The notes below the pieces were generated by a model. That model searched no databases. It saw nothing but the letters and a program-made list of their open reading frames with translations, and was not told the DNA's origin. Below, in pieces: positions 8,401 to 22,551 of a DNA stretch of 64,000 nucleotides. Source of the stretch: Calcarisporiella thermophila CBS 279.70 (Eukaryota; Fungi; Calcarisporiellomycota); NCBI RefSeq assembly GCF_041956535.1, contig NW_027192207.1:467374-531373 (forward strand), read 5' to 3'. Positions within the stretch are counted from its first letter, which is position 1. Each line of letters begins with the position of its first letter. Made by a program: the position numbers and the translations under genes.

Positions 8401-8993
8401 AGGCCGGATAGGCGGGATATGCGCAAATTTTTTCTCGCAGGCCTGGTCCAAGCTAGAACAAAAGCGAAAAAAAAAAAATTTAACACAAGCATGCGGGTCC
8501 CGGCGACAGGATGGGTAGGAACGCGAAGGTCGAGGCCGGCAACGGCGATGCGAGGCGATGCGAGGGAGGGCGGGCGCGGCGGCTGGTGTGCGGCCGGGGG
8601 TTGGACGGGCGCGGGGAAGGGAGCAGAGGGCAAGTGGGGTAAGCGGGGCGGGGGCGCTTCCCACAAGCAAGTTAAAAAGAGACAATCCACTATCCTGTAA
8701 AATTATATTGTCCCACATAACTAAGAAGCCACGTGCGATGATGAAAAACCACGTGGTGATGATTGTTTTATATGCTCTGAAATAAAATCCTTCCAACTCT
8801 CTCTGGCCAAAGTGCTCCAGCCAGGCTCTATCTTTCCCCTCCATTCTGCAAGCTCCCCTTCTCCCCATTTTCCTCATTTTCCCCTCCTTTCTTTGCATTC
8901 AAATCACGCATCCATCATCGGTATTTCTCGCTGGCAAAGAAGGTGTGAAGTGAAGAAGTGAAGAAGGGACCCCGACGAAAGAAAAGTGATATA

Positions 8994-9404
8994 ATGTCCT
9001 CACTCAACCGACTCTTCACACGACGGAGGCAAAAATCACAGGTAAATCTTTGTAATCATTCCGTAATCAGCGGTGATCTTGGATGGCCCACTCACCCCCC
9101 CTGGATGATTGCCCTACAGTCACATTCCGAACCCATCCAGCTACGCATCCAATCCAGCAAATCCACCAAAATCCCCACCCCACCCATGACCGCCCCCCAG
9201 CAGGGAACCGACTCGTGGGACGCCTACATCACCGACTTACAAAACGACCCCCTCTTTGATGCTCCTCCCCCTCCGCCACCCCCGCCCCCCGGCCATCCCA
9301 CCATGGCCATGAGCGCCCCCATCTCCTATCACCACTATTATGCGCAAGGTTACGATTATCGGAATACACATACCAACTATTCAAACTATGGTGCTGGGTC
9401 ATGA
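8994..9404 (+). CDS. Small Pro/Tyr-rich hypothetical protein, probably with one in-frame 78-nt intron (9042-9119)
   Basis: ATG 8994, canonical cag|gtaaat donor and ctacag acceptor, open frame with poly-Pro, followed by a pyrimidine-rich 3' region. No family recognised. Confidence 0.5.
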   Translation: MSSLNRLFTRRRQKSQVNLCNHSVISGDLGWPTHPPWMIALQSHSEPIQLRIQSSKSTKIPTPPMTAPQQGTDSWDAYITDLQNDPLFDAPPPPPPPPPGHPTMAMSAPISYHHYYAQGYDYRNTHTNYSNYGAGS

Positions 9405-9865
9405 ACAATCGGACTTGTCGTTGTTTTTCTTTTCCTTTAGTTTTATTCGTTTTGCTCTTATTTTCTTTTGCTTTGCCGCCACCCCTCCTTCTTCTTCTCC
9501 TCCCCCCCCCCCCCAAATCCCCCGCTACTCTTACTACTCCCTCTCTCACTGCCATTTTTGCTACTCTGACTGTTACTACTCCCGCGACTCTCGCTTCACT
9601 ATATATCATTTCCATCATGTGTATTATTATTGCTTCTTTTTGTTCTTTATAGCTTTGTAAATATATAAAGGAATAAACACCGGGCGGAAACAAAAATACG
9701 AGGGTGTTCTATTGTCTCTTATTCACAGATCCATTGCGTTATTATTTCGGATAATATTATACTACTTTGCAAAGTTTTAAGAAGAGAATAGAAAAAAAAA
9801 ATGGCGGAAGGGAGAGAGTCGTAACAAAGAAAACTAATTTTATCCGCTGGGGCGTGTGATAGCGG

Positions 9866-10900
9866 CTAGTAAGGGGCATAGTAGCCACGACGTCCTCTGA
9901 AATGGGAAGGCATGAATTAGTAGGCTGAGGGATGGCCATGCTCTTCAACCGAACTTACCTATATCGACCGCGGCCGCGGCCATATGACGGATAATGGTGA
10001 CCGTAGCCCATGAAGCGGCCTCGACCACGCCCCCGCATGGCCATTCCGGGCACATTGGTTCTCTTTGAGGTCACCTAGAGCAGAAGAGGAAGTTAGGGGG
10101 TGAAAAGGTCTGCTCGCATCCGCGGGCGAACCGAACAGAAAATGGCTACCTTGAGCAGTCGACCGCGGAACACCGACTCGTTCAGCGCCATGGCGTTGGC
10201 AACAAACTCAGGCTCGGCAAACTCCACATAGGCATAGCCTTTCGGGTGGCCGGTGAACTTGTCGCACAGAATCGTCACTCGATTGATGGTCCCGCAGGAC
10301 TGGAAGTGAGCCTGCAGCTCCTCAGGCGTGGTGCCATAGTCAACCTAATAATGAAAGCGATGAGTGGGCGAATCACCATAAGGCTTGGCAGAGACAAGGC
10401 AGCAAGAAATATCAAAAGATAAACTCCTCCTCCTCCTCTTCTTCTTCTCTTTATCCATTTTATAGTATCTTATTTTTTTAACATACATTGCCAACATAAA
10501 CTGATCGTGCATCAACCGCCTCTTTGCTTTCTATTTTTTATAATATTTTTTCGTTTTTTTAATCATTGTTTTTCCTTTTTAAGCCCTTTCTTTTTCCTCC
10601 CCCATGATCCTCCAAAAATAAACCCAATCAATCATTAATTACCTTCGCTCATTTCCTTCTCCACCTCAGCCTGCAACTCCCGCAGCTTGGCAGCCTCGGC
10701 CTCCATTTCCTTCACACGCTGTTTCATGGCCTCAAGTTGCTGAGGGAGAAGAATAAAAAAATCGCCGTGTTATTGTACCACTTCATAAAGGGCATCATCT
10801 TAGATCAGCGCTGGCAAATACTTACAGCCTCTTCGGGATTTTCGATCTGGTCACCGCCAGCGGTGTTGTCCTGCGGTTGCTCCTCCGGATGTGATGACAT
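9866..10900 (-). CDS. PAB2: Nuclear poly(A)-binding protein (PABPN1/Pab2/Sgn1), single RRM
   Basis: [22 protein letters not shown] coiled coil. [53 protein letters not shown]-rich tail ending YYAPY*. Confidence 0.95.
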
Positions 10901-12819: not shown

Positions 12820-13260
12820 CTAAAGCAAGAAGAAGGCCAAAACAGCGGCCTGTCCGGCCAAGAAGCCGTTGACCAGCACCTGTTCCGCCCCGGATCTTGC
12901 CGCCCCGGTGCCCGTGGGCCTAGCGGAGATGCCAGAGGAGGAGGAGGCGCTCTGGGAAGTGGCCGTCCCCGTGGCGGAAACGGCGCCGGAGCCCGCGGTC
13001 AGAACAGAGGCGGTTCCGGTGGAGGAAGCTCCTGCGGAGGTCGCGGAGGCGGATTCGCTAGAATCGGAGCTGGCCGAGGTTGCCGCGGCGGTGGTGGGCG
13101 CGGCTGAATCGGAGGAGGCGGCGGATGCACTCTCGTGCTTGTGGCCCGGCTCGTTGTGGTCACCGTGGTCGTGGCCGTCGTGACCGCGTACGTGAGTGGC
13201 GACGGCAAGCAGGAGGAGGATGCAGAAGAGGGAGAAGAGGGTGCGCGAGAACTTGGCCAT
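12820..13260 (-). CDS. Small GPI-anchored surface protein with His-rich mature N-terminus and Ser/Ala/Thr stalk
   Basis: Signal peptide MAKFSRTLFSLFCILLLLAVATHVRG, then HDGHDHGDHNEPGHKH, an S/A/T low-complexity stalk and hydrophobic C-terminus VLVNGFLAGQAAVLAFFLL. Intronless. Confidence 0.85.
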   Translation of the reverse strand: MAKFSRTLFSLFCILLLLAVATHVRGHDGHDHGDHNEPGHKHESASAASSDSAAPTTAAATSASSDSSESASATSAGASSTGTASVLTAGSGAVSATGTATSQSASSSSGISARPTGTGAARSGAEQVLVNGFLAGQAAVLAFFLL

Positions 13261-15197
13261 TGTCAGGGGCGAAGGAGAGAGGAGAGCTGGCTAGAAGGAG
13301 AGAGAGGAGAAACAAAGCAAAAAAACTGGAAGCGGAGGGAAAGCGGAAACGGGGGAGAAATATAAAGACGAGCGGGAGAAAAATGATCGCATCCCGTCAT
13401 CAGCGAGGGAGGAAGAAATGGAACGAGATTAGAGAGAAATAAAACCCGTCCAATCACTGGGTGTCAAGCGGGTCGGCTGATTGGCGGGAGCACAGAAGCG
13501 GTGGAGATTACATTCTTAATAAACGTTGAAGATGCTGCATGCAATGGGGCCAAACACTTTCATAATCGCCAGGCCAACCCATTGGCAGGCCCCGCTGCAT
13601 CGCGCAAGTTTCTGAGTCCTGTGCGCACCTGCTCTCTGAGGCACACCTCATTTGGGGCTTGGCGAGGTTTTTGTCGCTGCTCTCCCTCCTCTCCTCTCTC
13701 CGGCATCCTCGCGGGGAAGGGTCCCCTCGCAGGAGGCCCTGATGGGCTGGAAGGTACCCCTCCTAAAGAATTTTCCGCGGTGAAACGTGCCTATATCTAG
13801 CTTCTATTTTGGGCCTACGTATGGGATGCAGCCGAGGGTTTCTAGAATGGTGCAAGATGCAATTCGATCAAATCGAGGCCATGGCCTGAGCTCCGGTTTG
13901 TTTATTGTTCTTTTATTAAAAAACAAGGAGCGCTTGCTACAAGCGATGCCACCACCCTCCACCGGGAGAAAAAGGGTGGCTCTCGAAACTGAAACGTCCA
14001 TTGTGTAAATTGACTTTCTACAACGGCGGATTCTCTTTTGGGGGAGTCGGTTTTTGGCCACGGAATAGTAGGCACCATTTTTTAGGAAAATAATTGCTGT
14101 TTAGGTTATTTTTGGTGCAAAGGTTCAATCCCTGCGAGGATGGGGCATGTGAAAGCATAGAGATGGATGTTTCGTATCAATACAGCGCTTGCTTTAATGG
14201 GATCCACTGCGCTTCGATATCGGCGAGAATGTCGGGAAGAATGTATGTGCCCTGATCGCTGCCTATCTAAGAATATCTGAGCGCGTATTTCTGAAAAATC
14301 CATAATGGGCCAAAGGGGATATCTCCCGAGATGGAAACAAGGTTCGCCAAAGGGGTGGATCTGGGTTGGAATCGAATCAGCGAACCAAACCTCGATGGGA
14401 GCTGCTCAATTGGGTTTGCCTTGAAAGCATAGGAGGGTTAGAATTATCCGACGGCCGGTGCATCCTATTCGAATGAAACTCTAAAGCCGTCCAAAAAAGA
14501 AGGCGCCTATCCCGTAGAAGAAATAAGCTTTCCATGTGTTCTTGGGTTTCCGTGGTTTATCGCTGAGAAAGGAGCATCCCTGTGGCCGGCCTGATTTCAG
14601 ATGCCAGCAGGGTGGGAATTGGAGGCACTTGGGGCGATATCACGGCCATCAAGCTCGGGGTGCGTGGGCCGTTTCTATACTGGTAGCTTGGTGCGAGGCT
14701 TCTTGTTTGGGACGGGATGAGCAACGGGGCAAGCTTGCCCAGTTCAGGCCGAGTTGTACGACTGCATCACGCACTCGTGTCCGACCTGGCTGCGAGAGCG
14801 ATTAGATTACGCTTCAAAGGAGCGCGTCTTGGCTCTGCTAAAGCCGGCTCGCTTTCCCAGCGAGGACCGCCGCCCCACGCGCTATCTACCATCCTCCGCA
14901 ATGCATCGCTCCGGCCCATGCTGCGGGCTGAGAAGCCGAGGCAAATCGAGGGGATTTCATGCTCCCCAGCGATAGGTTACCCAAACTTTTCGACCGCTGC
15001 TGCGACAAGAGTACTTTTTATATTTAGTCTCACCTTTTGAACGTTATTTATTCTCTCAAATGAAACTCAATTCTTCATCGCTTCCTCCATTATTTCTCAC
15101 CCTCTCGCCTCTTCCTATTCTCCTCCTCGCCGCGCACCTCCTGGAATAGAGCGGCTGCGACGATAGCAAGCGAAGGAAAGGGCACCTTGAAAGGATT

Positions 15198-17115
15198 ATG
15201 GAGAGGAGCTCAGAGTTGCCACCGGGCGTGCCGGACCTAATTCCGCATGACCTCGGTCCCATCGATGTGGTCACCAAAATCTACGTTTTCTTGAATGTTA
15301 CGACCATTATTTGCGGATTGGTGGTGGTGTCCATCATCATTTTCTTAGGTAATTCAGCAACCGCGTCTCCCCATGGCTCTCTTGCATGTCGGAGGAGGAT
15401 GCGCGAATCAGCGTCGTTGGGTTTTGAGAGCATTTGCTCACAATTTGTTTTTTGCTCTCTATTCGCGTGGTGAATAGGCCGATTCGACAAGAAGTTGATA
15501 AGTCGCGTTTCACTCCGGCTGACGGCCGCCATATCCATCGTTGATGCATGTAATGCAGCCATCAACCTCTTATACGCGACTGCCTTACCGGTCAGCCCAT
15601 TTGTCTGCCAGTTTGCCGCGTGGGCAGTCGTGTTCACTAACCTTGCCTACATCTTTCTGACGGCCGCCATCGCAGTCAACCTGCAGCTCCTCGTGCTGCA
15701 CGAGAACCGTTTTCGGCCGTCGCTCGAAGTGGCTTATTGGACGGTCTCCTTGGGGATGAGCCTATTGTTAAGCCTGTTGCCTTGGTGTAAGTACTTTGCG
15801 CGGGGTCCATATAATGGATGTTCCAAGCATCAGACTATCCGTGCGACAATCCATCCTTCCTGTGTGTTTCACTGACGGCAACCTCTTTCCTCCTAAAATG
15901 TCTAGTCGCGGGCCGCTACGGCTATGACGAAGCCCAGGCCACATGCTGGTTCAAAGAGTCCTACACGATCCCCTCACGTATATGGGAGGCCGTATGGTGA
16001 GTAGTTGGGTTAATAAAAGGAGGAAAAGTCATAGACTCATTTTCTCTTCACCGCGGGTCTTTCGTAGCATGATTGTCTGGGTGTTGGGCCTGATAATCTA
16101 TTGCACCATTGTCGTTTTTCTGGTCAACATCAAACTCCATCGGCATAAAAAGCGGTTTCTCGCCTCCAAGAATATCAATCCAATGCTTCGACAGCGCCAG
16201 ACGCTGCTGAACAAACTCATAGCTCGAATTGGTAAGTGATCTCATGGTTAGCGAATCTCTCGTTGATGGGGGTGGCAAATACTGACGGTTACTGAACTGA
16301 CCAAGGCTTATACGCCGTCATCCCACTGATAACTCACTTGGGAATATGCATGTACGAGCTCAATATCATTATCAACTTACGGATCGAGATGTGGATGGGG
16401 TTCTGGAGTGCCATTGGCATATGTATGCATTCTTCTCGCCAGCCTGATTTTATTTATTTGGCTTCATGATGCTAAGCCTTTGCGTACGATAGCGTCCACC
16501 GGAATCTGGAATCTAGCCGCATTCCTATGCGACCCCGCCATTCACAACGCTTTTGACACCATTGCCTATAAAACGGTGCTAAAATACCATAAGCACGAGC
16601 TCCCTGGCCCGTTTCTCCAATGGATGGTGCGCCGCCTTCTCGTTCCTCGTTATCCGATCCCATCGTCCTATGTCCATAACCTGCTGCAATCGCACAGGCA
16701 ATCCTTGTCTGGCAAGAGAGCTCATCGGCCGAGCCTAGAGGGCTCTCTTCCCGAGGAAAACCAATGCCCTCCCTATCAACTCTACCAGCAACTCATGGCG
16801 GATTTCGGGCAATTCGACGGCGAGAGAATGAGGGCGTCTTCTCCACCCTCCTCGCAGCAACAGACGGAGGAGTGGAAATATTCAAGACGAATAGCTCTTC
16901 GACGCGACTCAGAGGGAGACAGTATCGATGACGACGAATTGCGCGAGGGAACCTTTATTCAGTACCAAGACGGCGTCGTGACCCATGTGACCCCCGTGCT
17001 ACCGAGTACCGAGGAGCCCATGCACTCTGGCATGATTGGAAGCCCCAGCAGAGTCAACTCCATAGTGAATGACAACTTGCGTTATAATGCGTATCTGGTG
17101 ATACGTGGATTATAA
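15198..17115 (+). CDS. 7TM G-protein-coupled receptor-like protein (cAMP-receptor/Git3-like fungal class); ~6 exons
   Basis: Exons give TM1 then DKKLISRVSLRL, CQFAAWAVVF...AAIAVNLQLLVL, YGYDEAQATCWF, ARIGLYAVIPLIT, GIWNLAAFLCDPAIH and a long cytosolic tail. Confidence 0.85.
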
Positions 17116-17698
17116 ACTGGCCCTTTCTGCTCTCGTCCACCCCACAAATCTTAGCCCTTTTTTTTTTCCACTATTGACAATGGAGACGTAGAAGGGTGCC
17201 TTCCACTTCTTCGTTCCTTTTTTATTTCAATGTTAGCCCATGCATTACACGTGCGTTTTTTGTATAGTATGGAATTCTTTCACTTTTTATTTTTCTTTGC
17301 CTCTTATTTAACTCCTAACTGTTTTTTTTTCTTTTCATTTTAATATCCAGCTGTTAATGTAATGTAATATATGCGTGGAATTGAGGATTGATTCGCTGAA
17401 TTGTCAATGGCCTCATGAATTAATTGGCATTTCCGTTTATAGAAATGTAAATAGGGATACTAAAGTGTATGTATATTTTATTGTTTTAAAAAAAAATAGA
17501 TAAGTAGATAAAACAAAAAGTCAATCCATGGAGAAGGAAGGATAACCCAAATAATATAGTTGAAAGCGGGGTAAGGAGTTCCAGCTCCGTGCACCGAAAA
17601 CACCCCCACACTACTCTTCTCCCGTTGAAATAAACAAATCAACCAAAGTACAACGAATTTATTTTGCAAGGGCAAATAGAAAAATAGGTAGGAATAAA

Positions 17699-19099
17699 TT
17701 AGAATGCGATGGCGTAGATACCGGCCAAGGCGGTCAGGGTGGCCCACATGGGGGAGATGGAGGCGGCCGATGACATTTGGGCATCGCCGGACGAATAACC
17801 AGAGGCGCCAACCAGGTTGGCGGTGGAAGGCTTGGGCTCGGCCTCGACAACGATGCCATCGGGAGTCTCGTTGGTCTGGGTAGAGGCTTGAGCAGTGGTG
17901 TTGGACTCGCCCAGCTTGCTGGATTCGCCAACGTTAACGCCCTCGGCAGCAGCGGTACCTGTCTCGCTCTTCTTTGCGGTCTCAGCACCCTCGCCTGCGG
18001 CTCCGGCATTCTTTTCGGTCTCGATCGAAACGCCGGTGCTGCCCTCCTTGCCTGCTTCCCCAGCGGCACCGGCCTCAGCCTTGCCACTCTTTCCAGCCTC
18101 CATCATCTTCTCCATCTCCTTCAGGGCTTCCTCGCTAATCTTGCCGGATTCCTTCATCTTCTCTAGCTCCTTCTTCATCTCCTCCATCGATTTGCCGGAC
18201 TCCATTATCTTCTCCACCTCCTTCATGGTCTCCTCGTTGATCTTGCCGGACTCCTTCATCTTCTCCATCTCCTTCTTCATTTCCTCCTTCGACATTCCGG
18301 TCTCGGCGCTTCCACTCTTGCCAGATTCGGCGCTTTCGCCTTTGCCAGACTCCATCATCTTCTCCATCTCTTTCATGGTTTCCTCGCTCATCTTACCGGT
18401 TTCCTTCATCTTCTCCATCTCTTTCTTCATTTCTTCCATCGATTTGCCAGATTCCATCATTTTCTCCATCTCCTTCATGGTTTCCTCGCTCATCTTACCG
18501 GTTTCCTTCATCTTCTCCATCTCCTTCTTCATTTCTTCCATTTTGCCGCCCATCTTCTCCCCCATCTTCTCTTCCGTCTTCTCCCCCATTTTCTCTCCCA
18601 TCTTCTCGCCTTCTTTACCCTCTGGCATTGGCATTTCGGGTTTGGGCATTTCGGGCTTGGGCATTTCGGGCATGGGCATCTCAGTGGTAGGCTTCTTCTT
18701 TGCCTTGCATTTCTTCAGGCGCTTCGCAACCTTGAGCACGCCTTTCATTCCGTTCTCGCAGTGCTTGCCGACGGTGCAGAAGTAGGGAACCTCGCCCACA
18801 TGCTTATCCTCAAGCGTGATGTTGAAGGTGAAACCGGCGGGGTGAGCGCCGGAGTCGAAGCCACCCGACATGGCCTCGCAGGAGTTTAGCTTCGCCGCCT
18901 GGGTAACGGAATGCATGCCGGCGACGAACTTAAACATGACCATATCTCCAACTCGGAGTGAGTCGGCCATGGGGGGGTCGTATTTGAGACCGCCTTTGCC
19001 GACCTCGATTTGCATGACCTTTCCGGAGGTATGGGAGGTGGCAGAGGCACCAGCGACTAGCGCGGCAATCGCCATGGAATATGTGATGAGGGAGCGCAT
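17699..19099 (-). CDS. GPI-anchored cupredoxin (type-1 blue copper) protein with Met/Glu/Lys-rich repeat stalk
   Basis: Signal peptide, VGDMVMFKF..MHSVTQA...C...GGFDSG, YFCTVGKHCENGM (His/Cys/His/Met ligands), repeat region, C-terminal SSAASISPMWATLTALAGIYAIAF. Confidence 0.92.
   Translation of the reverse strand: MRSLITYSMAIAALVAGASATSHTSGKVMQIEVGKGGLKYDPPMADSLRVGDMVMFKFVAGMHSVTQAAKLNSCEAMSGGFDSGAHPAGFTFNITLEDKHVGEVPYFCTVGKHCENGMKGVLKVAKRLKKCKAKKKPTTEMPMPEMPKPEMPKPEMPMPEGKEGEKMGEKMGEKTEEKMGEKMGGKMEEMKKEMEKMKETGKMSEETMKEMEKMMESGKSMEEMKKEMEKMKETGKMSEETMKEMEKMMESGKGESAESGKSGSAETGMSKEEMKKEMEKMKESGKINEETMKEVEKIMESGKSMEEMKKELEKMKESGKISEEALKEMEKMMEAGKSGKAEAGAAGEAGKEGSTGVSIETEKNAGAAGEGAETAKKSETGTAAAEGVNVGESSKLGESNTTAQASTQTNETPDGIVVEAEPKPSTANLVGASGYSSGDAQMSSAASISPMWATLTALAGIYAIAF
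18086..18541 (-). repeat. Four copies of a 102-bp (34-aa) Met-rich coding repeat, arranged as two pairs
   Basis: MEEMKKEMEKMKETGKMSEETMKEMEKMMESGKS twice nearly identical, a spacer, then two diverged copies. Preceded by PEMPK and GEKM short repeats (~18545-18680). Confidence 0.95.
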
Positions 19100-20401
19100 G
19101 CTTGTGTTGTTGTTATTGTTGTGGTGGTGGTGTTGGATATGTTACAGATGCTGGATGATAATGAGGATGCTATGAAAGTGAATGATCACTCAAGGATGAA
19201 GGAGTGGAGGTCTTGTTGGAAGGGGAAAGGGGAGGGAAAGGTTATGTATGGGGAGGGGTCGACGCGAATTTCTGAAGCAGAAATAGAAGGAAAAATTGGC
19301 TCGGCAAGCGAGCGAGGGGGTTTATATTGGTGCTTTGTTTGTTTTCGGTTCGTCGGGTATAGGTTATAGCTGACTCTTCTTTGGTGGAGAATCTATGTGG
19401 GTGAGTGTGCTCTCTGTCGTGTTGCGCTGTGCCGATTAGAGTTTATCAGAAGGGAAAGCCGACCATCTGCTTACCACTTCCGCTCTCAATCCAAGGCCAA
19501 ACCCGTAGCTTTTGTCCCGGGGTACTCGCCTGGCGGCCCAAGATAGAAAAGACCAAGGTTGGGTCCTCCAGACCATTCGAGGGATCTCGGAGCCACTATT
19601 TCAAACTCGGTCGAGCGCCTCTTCACCGTTCACTTTGTCATCGGGCGCACATTCGACTACCTGATTTACTAGAAATAAAAGCGGTCCCATCTCTCATGGA
19701 TAGCCTCTCTTCCCAATTTGGCAGCCGCAATTCGAGGTGGCCAATGGGCGGCCCAATTTCCAAAGTAGTCGAAATAGGGAAGGAGGAAAGGATCGAAGCC
19801 GGGTTTTGTGGCCAAGTGGGTTTGTACACTGCGTAGTTGAGTGGCCAATCCCCAGATCCTGATAATGGCCTAGTGGCCTTGGGCGATCCATCCTCGACTG
19901 AATACTTTCATTGCTTTTGGAAACGCTCGCCCATATCCAAGCGAGCTCTTGACTCATAGCCTGTTCCCAATCTGAGTTCTTCTCATCCTTGCTAATAAAA
20001 ATTTTTCATGGATTTACATGTATAAGCACTGGGGAGTTACTTTTTTAGCTTTTGCTTTTAGTCAAGTGTATTCAGACAGAGATCCTACACACCCTCTAAG
20101 CTCTATGATGCTAGAAACAGACATAAATAGAAGAGGAAAGGGAGAGGGGGGGGGGGCATGTTTGAAAGAAAAAAATGCCAAACACGGCCAGTATATCATG
20201 CAATAAATACTATATTATATCGAAACAAGTGAAAGAAAAAAAAAGCCTACAAAAATAGCCTTCAATAGAGTGGATAATGAAAAAGGACAGTGTAACAAAA
20301 GGGGGGATGCAAAATCAAGGAATGGCAATAAACACAGAAAAGTTTATGAGGGCAAGCAGGTCCAAGGAACAAGGCTTGCGATTATATTAGATCTAGCGCA
20401 T

Positions 20402-20887
20402 TTACAACTTCTTCTTTGCCTTGCACTTCTTCTTCTTCTTCTTTTCACCATTCGAGTTGCTGTTTGTGTTGCCATTGCCGTTGGTGTTGGTGTTGGTGGA
20501 GCCGTTCGACGAGCCTCCCGAACCTCCCGAGCCATCGGCCTTGCTGACCTTAAGCACCCCCTTCATGCCGTTCTGGCAGTGCTTGCCGACCTTGCAGAAG
20601 AAGCCCACGTCACCCACGTGCTTCTCCTCAAGGGTGAGGTTGAAGGAGAAACCGGCACCGTGGACATCCGAGTCGAATCCGCCCGCCATAGGATCACACG
20701 AATCTACCTTTTGGGCTTGGGTAACGGAGTGCATTCCCTTCACCCAGGTGAACATGACCATATCTCCAACTTTCGCCTGGGCATTGGGGGGATTGAACTT
20801 GAGGCCGCCGTCACCCACCTTCACTTCCACCATGGTGGCAAGAGCGGTGGATGCAAGGGCACAAAGGGTAAAGAGGGAGGTGCGCAT
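20402..20887 (-). CDS. Secreted single-domain cupredoxin, tandem paralogue of 17699-19099, with basic Cys-containing tail
   Basis: Signal peptide, VGDMVMFTW..MHSVTQAQKVDSCDPMAGGFDSD, FFCKVGKHCQNGMKGVLKV, G/S/N linker, KKKKKKCKAKKKL*. Confidence 0.92.
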   Translation of the reverse strand: MRTSLFTLCALASTALATMVEVKVGDGGLKFNPPNAQAKVGDMVMFTWVKGMHSVTQAQKVDSCDPMAGGFDSDVHGAGFSFNLTLEEKHVGDVGFFCKVGKHCQNGMKGVLKVSKADGSGGSGGSSNGSTNTNTNGNGNTNSNSNGEKKKKKKCKAKKKL

Positions 20888-22209
20888 GCTGGAGGGTTTT
20901 AGATTTTGAGTTTTAGGGTTTCTAGATGCAAGAAATGCAGGAAAATGAATGCCGAGGTATCGAAGCTACAATGATGCGATGATGGTATGCAAATGCAAGA
21001 ATGGAACAAAGGAAAGGAAGAAAGAAAAAAAATGTGCAAAGAGAGGAGTATTTACGAGTTTTGAAAACGGCACCGACGCCCCGGAGCTCATTTATTTATA
21101 CGTGTGTGCCTTTTTGTTATCCCAACTTTCAAAATAACCATATCCTTGCTTAATCGATAATATGATTATTTGGATACATATCACTCTTAGGTTACCGTGA
21201 CACGGAAGTCCAGGCCCTAAATCGACTGTCCCTTCAATTTTTCGGATTCCTTGATTTCGGATTCCTGCAAAATCAGTGGTGCTTGATTCAAATTTCAGCG
21301 AAAAAGTAGGGATTTAGGAGAGGGGGAAAAGAGGGAGAAATTTGTTTGTTTAATAACTTCTCCCATTACAGGACAAGGGGTTCGAGAAAAAGAGGGTGGA
21401 GCATACAATTCTTTATTAGTAAGTGTAGATCATATTTGTAGGTTTCTACCTTGCTTTATTGCGTGGTTTTAGCGTTGAGTGAGCACGAAAAAAAAAAAAC
21501 CATTAAGATGGGAGCTTGTGAGTAGAATGGAACATCGTTTGAAATAAAAGTGGTTGACCATGTCGTGCTTATACTGTCAGTGAGTCTTCTATTGCTTGGA
21601 AAGGCCGCTAACCCTTACAGGACTTATCTGTTTCAAAATTTCTTGGCCCGGGGGAGCTAAAACAACGCAGTGCACAGGAGCAAAATGGTTTTGGATAGGG
21701 CGTGGAGCCACTTGTAACTTCCGGTGCGTAAGATAAAAAGAGGATCATTGTGCTCTTTGAGAATTAATGGGAAAATCGGTCAACTAAGCACAAAGAAATG
21801 GGGGATCCTGTTTAATTCCCACCTCCCATCCCCATCCTCCTAAGCTTGGGGAGGAGCATTGGATTGGAGGCCCGGCCGTCCATCAAATAAGTTTAGAGAA
21901 GAAGAGAGGAAGAGGGGGAGAAGGTTGCGATAGCAATTTTTTTTTTCACCTGTCATCCATGATTTGCGGAATTGAAATTTGAAATTAATAGGCATGATCT
22001 AATGGCGACGATCATACCTTTTTGCCTTAGTTCGATGTCATTATATGAGCATTATATGTGTGAAGCTTGTTAAGAAGCAATACACATCTCATGTATTACT
22101 AGAAAACAGGTCACATTACATCCTCCATTCACTTATCACCCCTCTTTCTAAATCTATATAATCTGAACAAGTAACAACAGGAAAAATAAAACAATCTAAA
22201 GGCTCCTCT

Positions 22210-22551
22210 TTACTCGTTCTTCTTCTCGGCCGCCTGCGCCTTCATCAAGCACTCCTTTTGGCATTCTGCGGGCTTGCCGTTGGTCTGGCACTGAGCGACG
22301 CACGCGTTCGTGTCCATGGGCGGGGCAGCTTTGGCTCCAGCGGCGTGAGCGCCTCCGTCTGGCTTGGGCAGGATGCCTCCATCGGGCTTGGGGCCTTCGG
22401 GCTTGGGCGCGCCCGCAGGTCCGCCTTCAGGAGTTTGGGCACGCGGATCTGCGCCGACATCATTGGGCTTGGGCTGGGCCTTGGGGTCGGGTTTTCCGGC
22501 AGCGACGAAGGCAATGGTGGTGGCAAGGAGCAGAACAAAAGACAGCTTCAT
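22210..22551 (-). CDS. Small secreted protein with Pro/Gly/Lys-rich PKPxG region and C-terminal CX3C-X8-CX3C motif
   Basis: Signal MKLSFVLLLATTIAFVAA, CVAQCQTNGKPAECQKEC, TATA-like TATATAAAG on the minus strand at ~22672-22680. Confidence 0.85.
   Translation of the reverse strand: MKLSFVLLLATTIAFVAAGKPDPKAQPKPNDVGADPRAQTPEGGPAGAPKPEGPKPDGGILPKPDGGAHAAGAKAAPPMDTNACVAQCQTNGKPAECQKECLMKAQAAEKKNE

Follow-up and report, generated by a model that had tools for sequence, protein, structure and literature searches.

A tandem pair of putative phytocyanin-like copper proteins, one with a methionine-rich stalk, in Calcarisporiella thermophila

Calcarisporiella thermophila is an early-diverging, thermophilic fungus with a phylum of its own, Calcarisporiellomycota. 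In a 64,000-nucleotide stretch of its 28-Mb assembly (contig C17, 467374-531373; hereafter the window), we analysed three minus-strand open reading frames (ORFs), each uninterrupted, whose translations span 12820-13260 (146 amino acids, aa), 17699-19099 (466 aa) and 20402-20887 (161 aa). Our analysis points to the latter two as a tandem pair of type-1 (blue) copper proteins from a phytocyanin-like, cell-surface subfamily specific to this lineage, with the methionine-rich stalk of the longer protein acting as a Cu(I) or Ag(I) buffer and the surrounding genes being unlinked neighbours; taken as a whole, we give this account about an even chance of being right. What is new here, as far as the sequence can tell, is the Met-rich helical stalk together with a basic KKCKAK motif, both carried on an otherwise known phytocyanin-like architecture of the glycosylphosphatidylinositol (GPI) type. 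GPI anchoring and signal-peptide cleavage were read from the sequence throughout. An earlier note on this DNA had described three co-oriented, uninterrupted signal-peptide ORFs within 8 kb and had proposed that they form a copper capture and relay system at the cell surface; every feature that it described was found where it had been placed.

Results

Both cupredoxin domains have complete type-1 copper sites at the sequence level

The pair and the parts of the longer protein are as follows.

17699-19099, minus strand: Met-stalk cupredoxin, 466 aa, with signal peptide, cupredoxin domain, KKCKAKKK, Met-rich stalk, Ser/Ala/Gly/Glu spacer and GPI-like tail
18695-19039, minus strand: cupredoxin domain plus basic Cys motif, residues 21-135 of the 466-aa protein (from alignment, AlphaFold2 and Foldseek)
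18065-18694, minus strand: Met-rich stalk, residues 136-345 of the 466-aa protein (from tandem repeats, composition and AlphaFold2)
20402-20887, minus strand: short cupredoxin, 161 aa, with signal peptide, cupredoxin domain, Gly/Ser/Asn/Thr linker and KKKKKKCKAKKKL end

The 466-aa protein matches the Pfam family Cu_bind_like (PF02298) with 24 bits against a cut-off of 20.8, and the 161-aa protein matches Copper-bind (PF00127) with 33.6 bits against a cut-off of 21.2. The copper ligands are H63, C108, H113 and M118 in the former and H53, C98, H103 and M108 in the latter, and the corresponding alignment columns (H36, C81, H86 and M91, with C-x4-H-x4-M spacing) are invariant in all seven aligned paralogous domains. 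Equally invariant across the seven is a further Cys pair (alignment C47 and C87), represented by C74 and C114 of the 466-aa protein, which are candidates for a disulfide; the pair aligns with the HC motif of umecyanin and stellacyanin. In phytocyanins, the corresponding Cys pair forms a disulfide beside the copper site. A different cysteine of the 466-aa protein, C131, is unpaired and lies inside KKCKAKKK.

By sequence, the closest solved structures were umecyanin (E 0.003) and stellacyanin (E 0.004), followed by plastocyanin (E 0.006), with alignments spanning the C-x4-H-C-x3-M loop. Single-sequence AlphaFold2 (AF2) left the cupredoxin domain unfolded (predicted local distance difference test, pLDDT, 27-44), and residues 21-135 of the 466-aa protein were modelled instead with an alignment of 39 family sequences, yielding a pLDDT of 94.8 and a predicted template modelling (TM) score (pTM) of 0.86. 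Foldseek searches with this model returned plastocyanins first (TM 0.67-0.74, best E 7e-7), and also plantacyanin, pseudoazurin and AcoP. On phytocyanin versus plastocyanin kinship, sequence thus ranks umecyanin and stellacyanin first by a small margin, whereas Foldseek ranks plastocyanins first. From sequence and fold model together, both domains can confidently be read as blue-copper (type-1) modules with a Greek-key beta-sandwich and with complete copper sites at the sequence level. The two His/Cys/His/Met type-1 sites reported in the earlier note are therefore upheld at that level by Pfam, by the invariant ligands and by the fold model. The mature N-termini of both proteins are not His-rich.

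The 161-aa ORF is 100% identical to NCBI VTP21DRAFT_3424 of C. thermophila; a word-index protein search with it matched only itself, a blank that says nothing on distant kin. It has neither a stalk nor a hydrophobic, GPI-like tail, ending one residue past the basic Cys motif, and no stalk-like coding sequence is present downstream of its end. Because the ORF stops right after the motif, the 161-aa protein is best read as a truncated, non-anchored derivative, presumably released. The public model of this gene has 199 aa, with 38 extra residues before the signal peptide (window 20888-21010, minus strand). Upstream of the ATG at 20887 the frame is open for only 26 codons, so the first 12 residues of the 199-aa model need a spliced upstream exon; the start of that model is probably wrong, because it would bury the signal peptide. 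The 466-aa ORF scores best for codon usage in its own frame. Its exact product and that of the 146-aa ORF are both absent from a collection of 15 billion proteins, although neighbouring genes of this genome are present there, and the two are either unannotated or differently modelled in the public annotation.

The pair belongs to a paralogue family and a clade of three

The genome contains at least nine cupredoxin-domain matches. Five further paralogues combine a signal peptide and all four ligands with a stalk of low complexity and a GPI-like hydrophobic tail, and two paralogues have degenerate copper sites. By sequence reading, a signal-like N-terminus and a hydrophobic C-terminal tail after small residues are shared by the 146-aa ORF, the 466-aa ORF and five other paralogues. 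The stalks of the family differ: there are Ser/Ala/Pro-rich ones and one that is extremely acidic. The latter belongs to one of the two degenerate copies, an intron-bearing paralogue at 1317178-1317438 of contig C2 and downstream, which has lost His/Cys/His/Met and has a Glu-rich stalk, scattered Cys and a GPI-like tail; it parallels the plant early nodulin-like proteins, which are also ligand-less.

The two cupredoxin domains of the window are 66% identical. In the tree, they form a clade (support 100/97) with a third member on contig C12 (335 aa, VTP21DRAFT_1569); the short copy branches first, leaving the 466-aa and 335-aa proteins together on an inner branch (support 94/77). A basic motif with a lone Cys stands right after the domain in all three members (KKCKAKKK, KKKKKKCKAKKK and KRKKCKAKTK). 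The C12 copy, at 8931-9878 of the examined C12 stretch, carries the last of these; then come a segment in which 12 of 60 residues are Met, an extended Ser-rich stalk and a GPI-like tail. Its translation shows a putative Met arm and a conventional Ser stalk coexisting in one protein. Tandem duplication accounts for the adjacency of 17699-19099 and 20402-20887, and the tree suggests that the tandem pair arose first and that one copy was later dispersed to contig C12.

Directly before the KKCKAK motif (window 18709-18720, minus strand), both long paralogues have a dibasic KR (AKR followed by L, and GKR followed by K), which is absent from the short one. It could be a candidate Kex2-type site, releasing the copper domain from the stalk.

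Beyond this genome, 1.84 billion representatives were searched with a profile, and 8533 hits, many of them multi-domain, reached E<=1e-3. The nearest named relatives are from chytrids (Borealophlyctis, Quaeritorhiza, Spizellomyces, Kappamyces and Gonapodya), one of them labelled 'Phytocyanin domain-containing protein' by UniRef. The closest non-self homologue is that of Borealophlyctis nickersoniae, with a domain 48% identical. A gene of the ferric/cupric reductase type (Ferric_reduct, FAD_binding_8 and NAD_binding_6) is situated 8 kb away from this homologue, a single case that may be chance; the features on that contig are at 237-2109 and 10001-10654 of the examined stretch.

The stalk is a methionine-rich repeat predicted to form short amphipathic helices

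Between residues 136 and 345, the 466-aa protein consists of 27% E, 21% K, 19% M and 10% G. The Met-studded stalk of the earlier note is confirmed by the count of 40 Met in 210 residues, far above chance, arranged in 12 MxxM, 9 MxxxM, 3 MM and 2 MxM motifs. From its N-terminal end, the stalk runs through PEMP(K/M) repeats and GEKM repeats to eight units of ~17 residues (SMEEMKKEMEKMKETGK / MSEETMKEMEKMMESGK), and the underlying DNA is made of tandem repeats of 15 bp x3.3 (PEMPK), 12 bp x4.9 (GEKM), 51 bp x8.6 and 102 bp x2 (95% matches). In the single-sequence AF2 prediction, the stalk forms eight helices of 12-13 residues each, with S/TGK turns between them, at pLDDT 72-87. Hydrophobic residues in the eight units are spaced i, i+3, i+7, i+10, and the helical moment of these positions is 0.68 against 0.38 for shuffled sequences, a value reached in none of 5000 shuffles. 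Met fills 30 of the 36 hydrophobic positions and I, L or V the other 6; the eight repeats contain neither His nor Cys.

The richest 60-residue window holds 17 Met in the 466-aa protein and 12 in the C12 paralogue, whose Met-rich segment is shorter and diverged, and clearly related to the 466-aa stalk. No other Met-rich segment was found among the best 150 family representatives of the 8533 hits. A word-index search with the stalk gave no match, not even itself, among 8000 scored candidates, probably owing to composition filtering, and is uninformative on distant kin.

These features suggest a stalk built of short amphipathic helices in series, with Met making up nearly the whole of their hydrophobic face. 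Most likely, it would buffer Cu(I) (or Ag(I)) at multiple thioether sites of low affinity beside a one-electron copper centre at the membrane or wall, in the manner of the Met-rich segments of CopI, CueO and SilE.

Comparison with known copper proteins

The domain architecture resembles that of the phytocyanins (stellacyanin, umecyanin, plantacyanin, uclacyanins and early nodulin-like proteins) and of the fungal proteins called 'GPI-anchored cupredoxin' or 'extracellular serine-rich protein'. In common with them, it has a single cupredoxin domain with His/Cys/His/Met and a Cys after the second ligand His that may pair with another one upstream; a signal peptide precedes the domain, and a low-complexity stalk and a GPI-like tail follow it. 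It differs in that the stalk is a Met-rich E/K helical repeat rather than Ser/Thr/Pro-rich (arabinogalactan-like), and in the basic KKCKAK motif with its lone Cys after the domain. In the literature that we found, fungal 'GPI-anchored cupredoxins' appear in expression lists only, with no function given.

Met-rich binders of Cu(I) or Ag(I) include the Mets motifs of Ctr1, the Met-rich helix of CueO, and SilE/PcoE, in which Met is usually mixed with His or the segment is short. The stalk shares with these the MxxM and MxxxM spacing on helices and, as in CueO, the position of a Met segment beside a type-1 copper site; unlike them, it is His-free, is 48% E+K and is regularly helical. The role of Met-rich domains is called elusive in a passage of one paper (PMC11840665).

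As regards the proposed mechanism, the nearest described counterpart is CopI, a periplasmic copper-tolerance cupredoxin found in Rubrivivax gelatinosus and further bacteria, which has an N-terminal His-rich Cu(II) site (DAGHDHGSAHAGAHAHDA; DAGHDHGSAH...) (PMC13308877). In the model put forward for it, a His/Met-rich region takes Cu(I) and passes it to the copper centre, and in a peptide study its Asp/His-rich tips bound Cu(II) better than Zn(II) (PMC13308877). A cupredoxin centre, a His-rich N-terminal peptide and a Met region thus occur together there, as they do in our window. CopI combines them in one small periplasmic protein, where a short conserved His/Met loop inside the fold serves as the Met region, whereas here, in a eukaryote, the Met region is 210 aa long, C-terminal to the domain and His-free, and the His tip belongs to another gene at a distance of 4.4 kb. 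The proteins of the window do not belong to the CopI family, with a Met region outside the fold and without His, and with cupredoxin N-termini that are not His-rich. We consider the resemblance to CopI to be a functional analogy, with kinship probably limited to the common fold. The earlier note knew of no such arrangement having been described; that needs narrowing, as the same three chemistries are found within CopI.

For the His-tip gene, the nearest described fungal surface copper-capture protein, going by passages of two papers, is Bim1/Cbi1 of Cryptococcus, an X325 protein resembling lytic polysaccharide monooxygenases (LPMOs) that is GPI-anchored, binds copper through a histidine at its N-terminus and, when copper is limiting, supports uptake that depends on Ctr1 (PMC9258870, PMC10952591). 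The His-tip ORF was considered for the X325/Bim1 family and rejected: Bim1 has a folded LPMO-like domain with a histidine brace, and the ORF has none.

A histidine-tipped ORF and a putative seven-transmembrane gene lie beside the pair

Downstream of the pair in the direction of its transcription are two further genes, one on each strand.

12820-13260, minus strand: His-tip ORF, 146 aa, with signal-like N-terminus, His-rich tip, Ser/Ala/Thr stalk and GPI-like hydrophobic tail
13132-13194, minus strand: His-rich tip, residues 23-43 (HVRGHDGHDHGDHNEPGHKHE), read from the translation
about 15198-17115, plus strand: putative cAMP-receptor-like seven-transmembrane (7TM) gene, multi-exon, from exon frames and GT..AG candidates

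The N-terminal His motif of the earlier note is present: seven His fall within residues 23-42 of the 146-aa ORF (positions 23, 27, 30, 32, 35, 40 and 42) and none elsewhere. Beyond residue 43 the protein is Ser/Ala/Thr-rich and of low complexity up to a hydrophobic C-terminal tail. With plausible cleavage between AVA and T or between VRG and H, the tip would sit at or beside the mature N-terminus, where it is by itself a plausible binder of Cu(II) or Zn(II). For this ORF, Pfam gave no match, and the 5444 word-sharing candidates included no homologue (a blank that says nothing on distant kin); no paralogue was found in its own genome, where only low-complexity matches were returned. A genome-wide search for exact HDGHDH-coding strings gave one other hit, a HDGHDH(G)HDH-coding string at 549661-549690 of contig C18; as it runs antisense to a ribosomal protein uS5-like gene, we rejected it as chance and not a second His-tip gene.

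The 7TM gene has several introns and seven hydrophobic segments distributed across its exons. Pfam searches, run exon by exon, were blank, and the language-model look-alikes of the exon for transmembrane segments 2-4, Dicty_CAR/7tm_2 clusters, reached 0.89, below the 0.9 line, which makes them a lead only. The G protein-coupled receptor (GPCR) that the earlier note saw between the copper genes is plausible as a label, with its seven hydrophobic segments in place and its family assignment short of the threshold. Elsewhere in the genome the exon is matched at least 15 times, always away from the other cupredoxin copies.

Discussion

Alternative readings of the stalk and of the locus

The serious rival to a metal-buffering stalk is a mere spacer, made of short amphipathic E/K helices that lift the copper domain off the membrane, in which Met would serve as a hydrophobic residue without metal. 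Its attractions are considerable: the heptad-like Met spacing and the helical moment fit it, as do the regular short helices given by AF2, and other paralogues have quite different stalks, of which the Ser/Thr-rich ones would do the same job. Two points in particular weigh against the buffer. The i, i+3, i+7, i+10 pattern, with I, L or V standing in for Met at 6 of 36 equivalent positions and with no His or Cys, is what would be expected of a purely structural face, and much of the Met count stems from recent repeat expansion (the 102-bp units with 95% matches) rather than from site-by-site selection. Yet Met at 30 of 36 hydrophobic positions is very unusual for a structural helix face; the PEMP and GEKM repeats, which lie outside the helices, are also Met-rich; and Met richness has been retained in two paralogues whose domains are ~0.47 changes per site apart, even though Met has a single codon. 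We place the buffer somewhat ahead, because Met dominates over the aliphatic residues, because it has been kept in two unlinked copies despite its single codon, and because the stalk is joined directly to a copper domain; this weighing draws on sequence and on analogy with known Met-rich binders, and the spacer seems to us possible, though on the unlikely side. Considerably bolder, and in our view a long shot, would be to see the Met stalk as a eukaryotic surface sponge for multiple Cu(I) ions wired to a blue-copper centre, an independent fungal counterpart of the CopI and CueO arms, with the Cys of KKCKAK as a hand-over or dimerisation point and the His tip as the Cu(II) end.

The buffer reading concerns the cupredoxins by themselves; a wider proposal, that of the earlier note, is that the His-tip protein, the Met-stalk cupredoxin, the short cupredoxin and perhaps the 7TM receptor make up one wall-tethered copper capture and relay system, clustered by joint function. 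The part of it concerning the two cupredoxins is supported, in that both are surface-built blue-copper modules; the joining of three genes and a 7TM gene into one system is not, given the neighbours of the paralogue, the promoters and the chytrids. Three chemistries do stand co-oriented within 8 kb, CopI unites the same three elements in one bacterial protein, with a GHDHG in its His-rich peptide like that of the tip here, and secretory-looking ORFs are concentrated within 9.4-22.6 kb of the window. By a rough estimate from nine cupredoxin loci, ~15 7TM-exon matches and 28 Mb, ~0.05 pairs would be expected within 5 kb. On the other side, two of the three genes are tandem duplicates, and the partners were picked after the region had been seen. 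The neighbours of the Met-stalk locus on C12 comprise genes resembling those for glycyl-tRNA synthetase and acetylglutamate kinase, an amino-acid permease gene and a chitin synthase gene; neither a His-rich ORF nor a 7TM gene is among them. Conserved linkage, which the earlier note had put forward as a check, failed to appear in the three chytrid homologues, very distant relatives only, whose neighbours are unrelated and include no such set. The three promoters share only A/T-rich words, namely 7 common 8-mers (control mean 3.0, maximum 14) and a single common 9-mer that is also in the control range; Mac1/MacA-type elements (TTTGCKCR, TGTGCTCA) are absent from them and at chance level in the window, although this consensus may not be that of the phylum. 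Nor does the 64-kb window contain a Ctr, Fet3 or FRE gene, and the His-tip ORF lacks a homologue or paralogue. That ORF could itself be no real gene, an open frame in GC-rich, low-complexity DNA whose 'third chemistry' is an artefact: its product is missing from public protein sets despite an annotated genome, no homologue was found among the 5444 candidates, and the other frames contain three overlapping ORFs of 100-120 aa. We find this unlikely, since its signal-like start, its stalk and its hydrophobic tail after small residues make up a coherent secretory/GPI architecture, its frame has a codon score above those of the other five and similar to that of the short cupredoxin (0.19 versus 0.25 bits per codon), and a CT-rich leader and a good ATG context precede it; its absence from the public set is weak evidence, because the 466-aa cupredoxin is missing too. 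It is probably a real gene. Against treating the neighbours as unlinked, it counts that the synteny comparison covered only very distant chytrid homologues and that the local clustering of secretory ORFs leaves room for some local co-regulation. Weighing these points, we regard the His-tip and 7TM genes as neighbours of the copper genes with no apparent functional link to them; an integrated cluster is not supported by the tests available, and joint function of the whole set appears improbable to us. The cluster idea would matter only with co-regulation.

Implications of the methionine stalk

GPI-anchored cupredoxins are widespread in fungi, with relatives in other eukaryotes, and their function is unassigned. 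A Met-only amphipathic repeat placed right after the copper domain and kept in two unlinked paralogues amounts to a natural experiment, one that points to the handling of copper (or silver), beyond electron transfer, as a role of the family. The ~17-residue unit is a compact, expressible module for testing Cu(I) binding by thioether-lined helices. If the stalk binds copper, the principle of CopI and CueO would hold at the fungal cell surface as well as in the bacterial periplasm; otherwise, the stalk would be a curious case of Met as a structural hydrophobic residue.

Other secretory ORFs of the window

The window has four co-oriented secretory ORFs, those at 12820, 17699, 20402 and 22210, to which a small signal-like ORF on the opposite strand adds a fifth. 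In the remaining ~40 kb of the window we found no further plausible secreted ORF with a crude scan, which itself missed both cupredoxins; three other matches of the scan in that part look spurious and were rejected. The small ORF on the opposite strand (9401-9652, plus strand) encodes 83 aa with a signal-like start, a Pro-rich stretch and a hydrophobic tail. The fourth of the co-oriented ORFs (22210-22551, minus strand, 113 aa) lies 1.3 kb upstream of the cupredoxin pair and gave no Pfam match and no usable protein-atlas look-alike. It has a signal peptide, a Pro/Gly/Lys-rich region and a C-terminal CX3C-X8-CX3C, the four Cys of which could be metal or disulfide sites.

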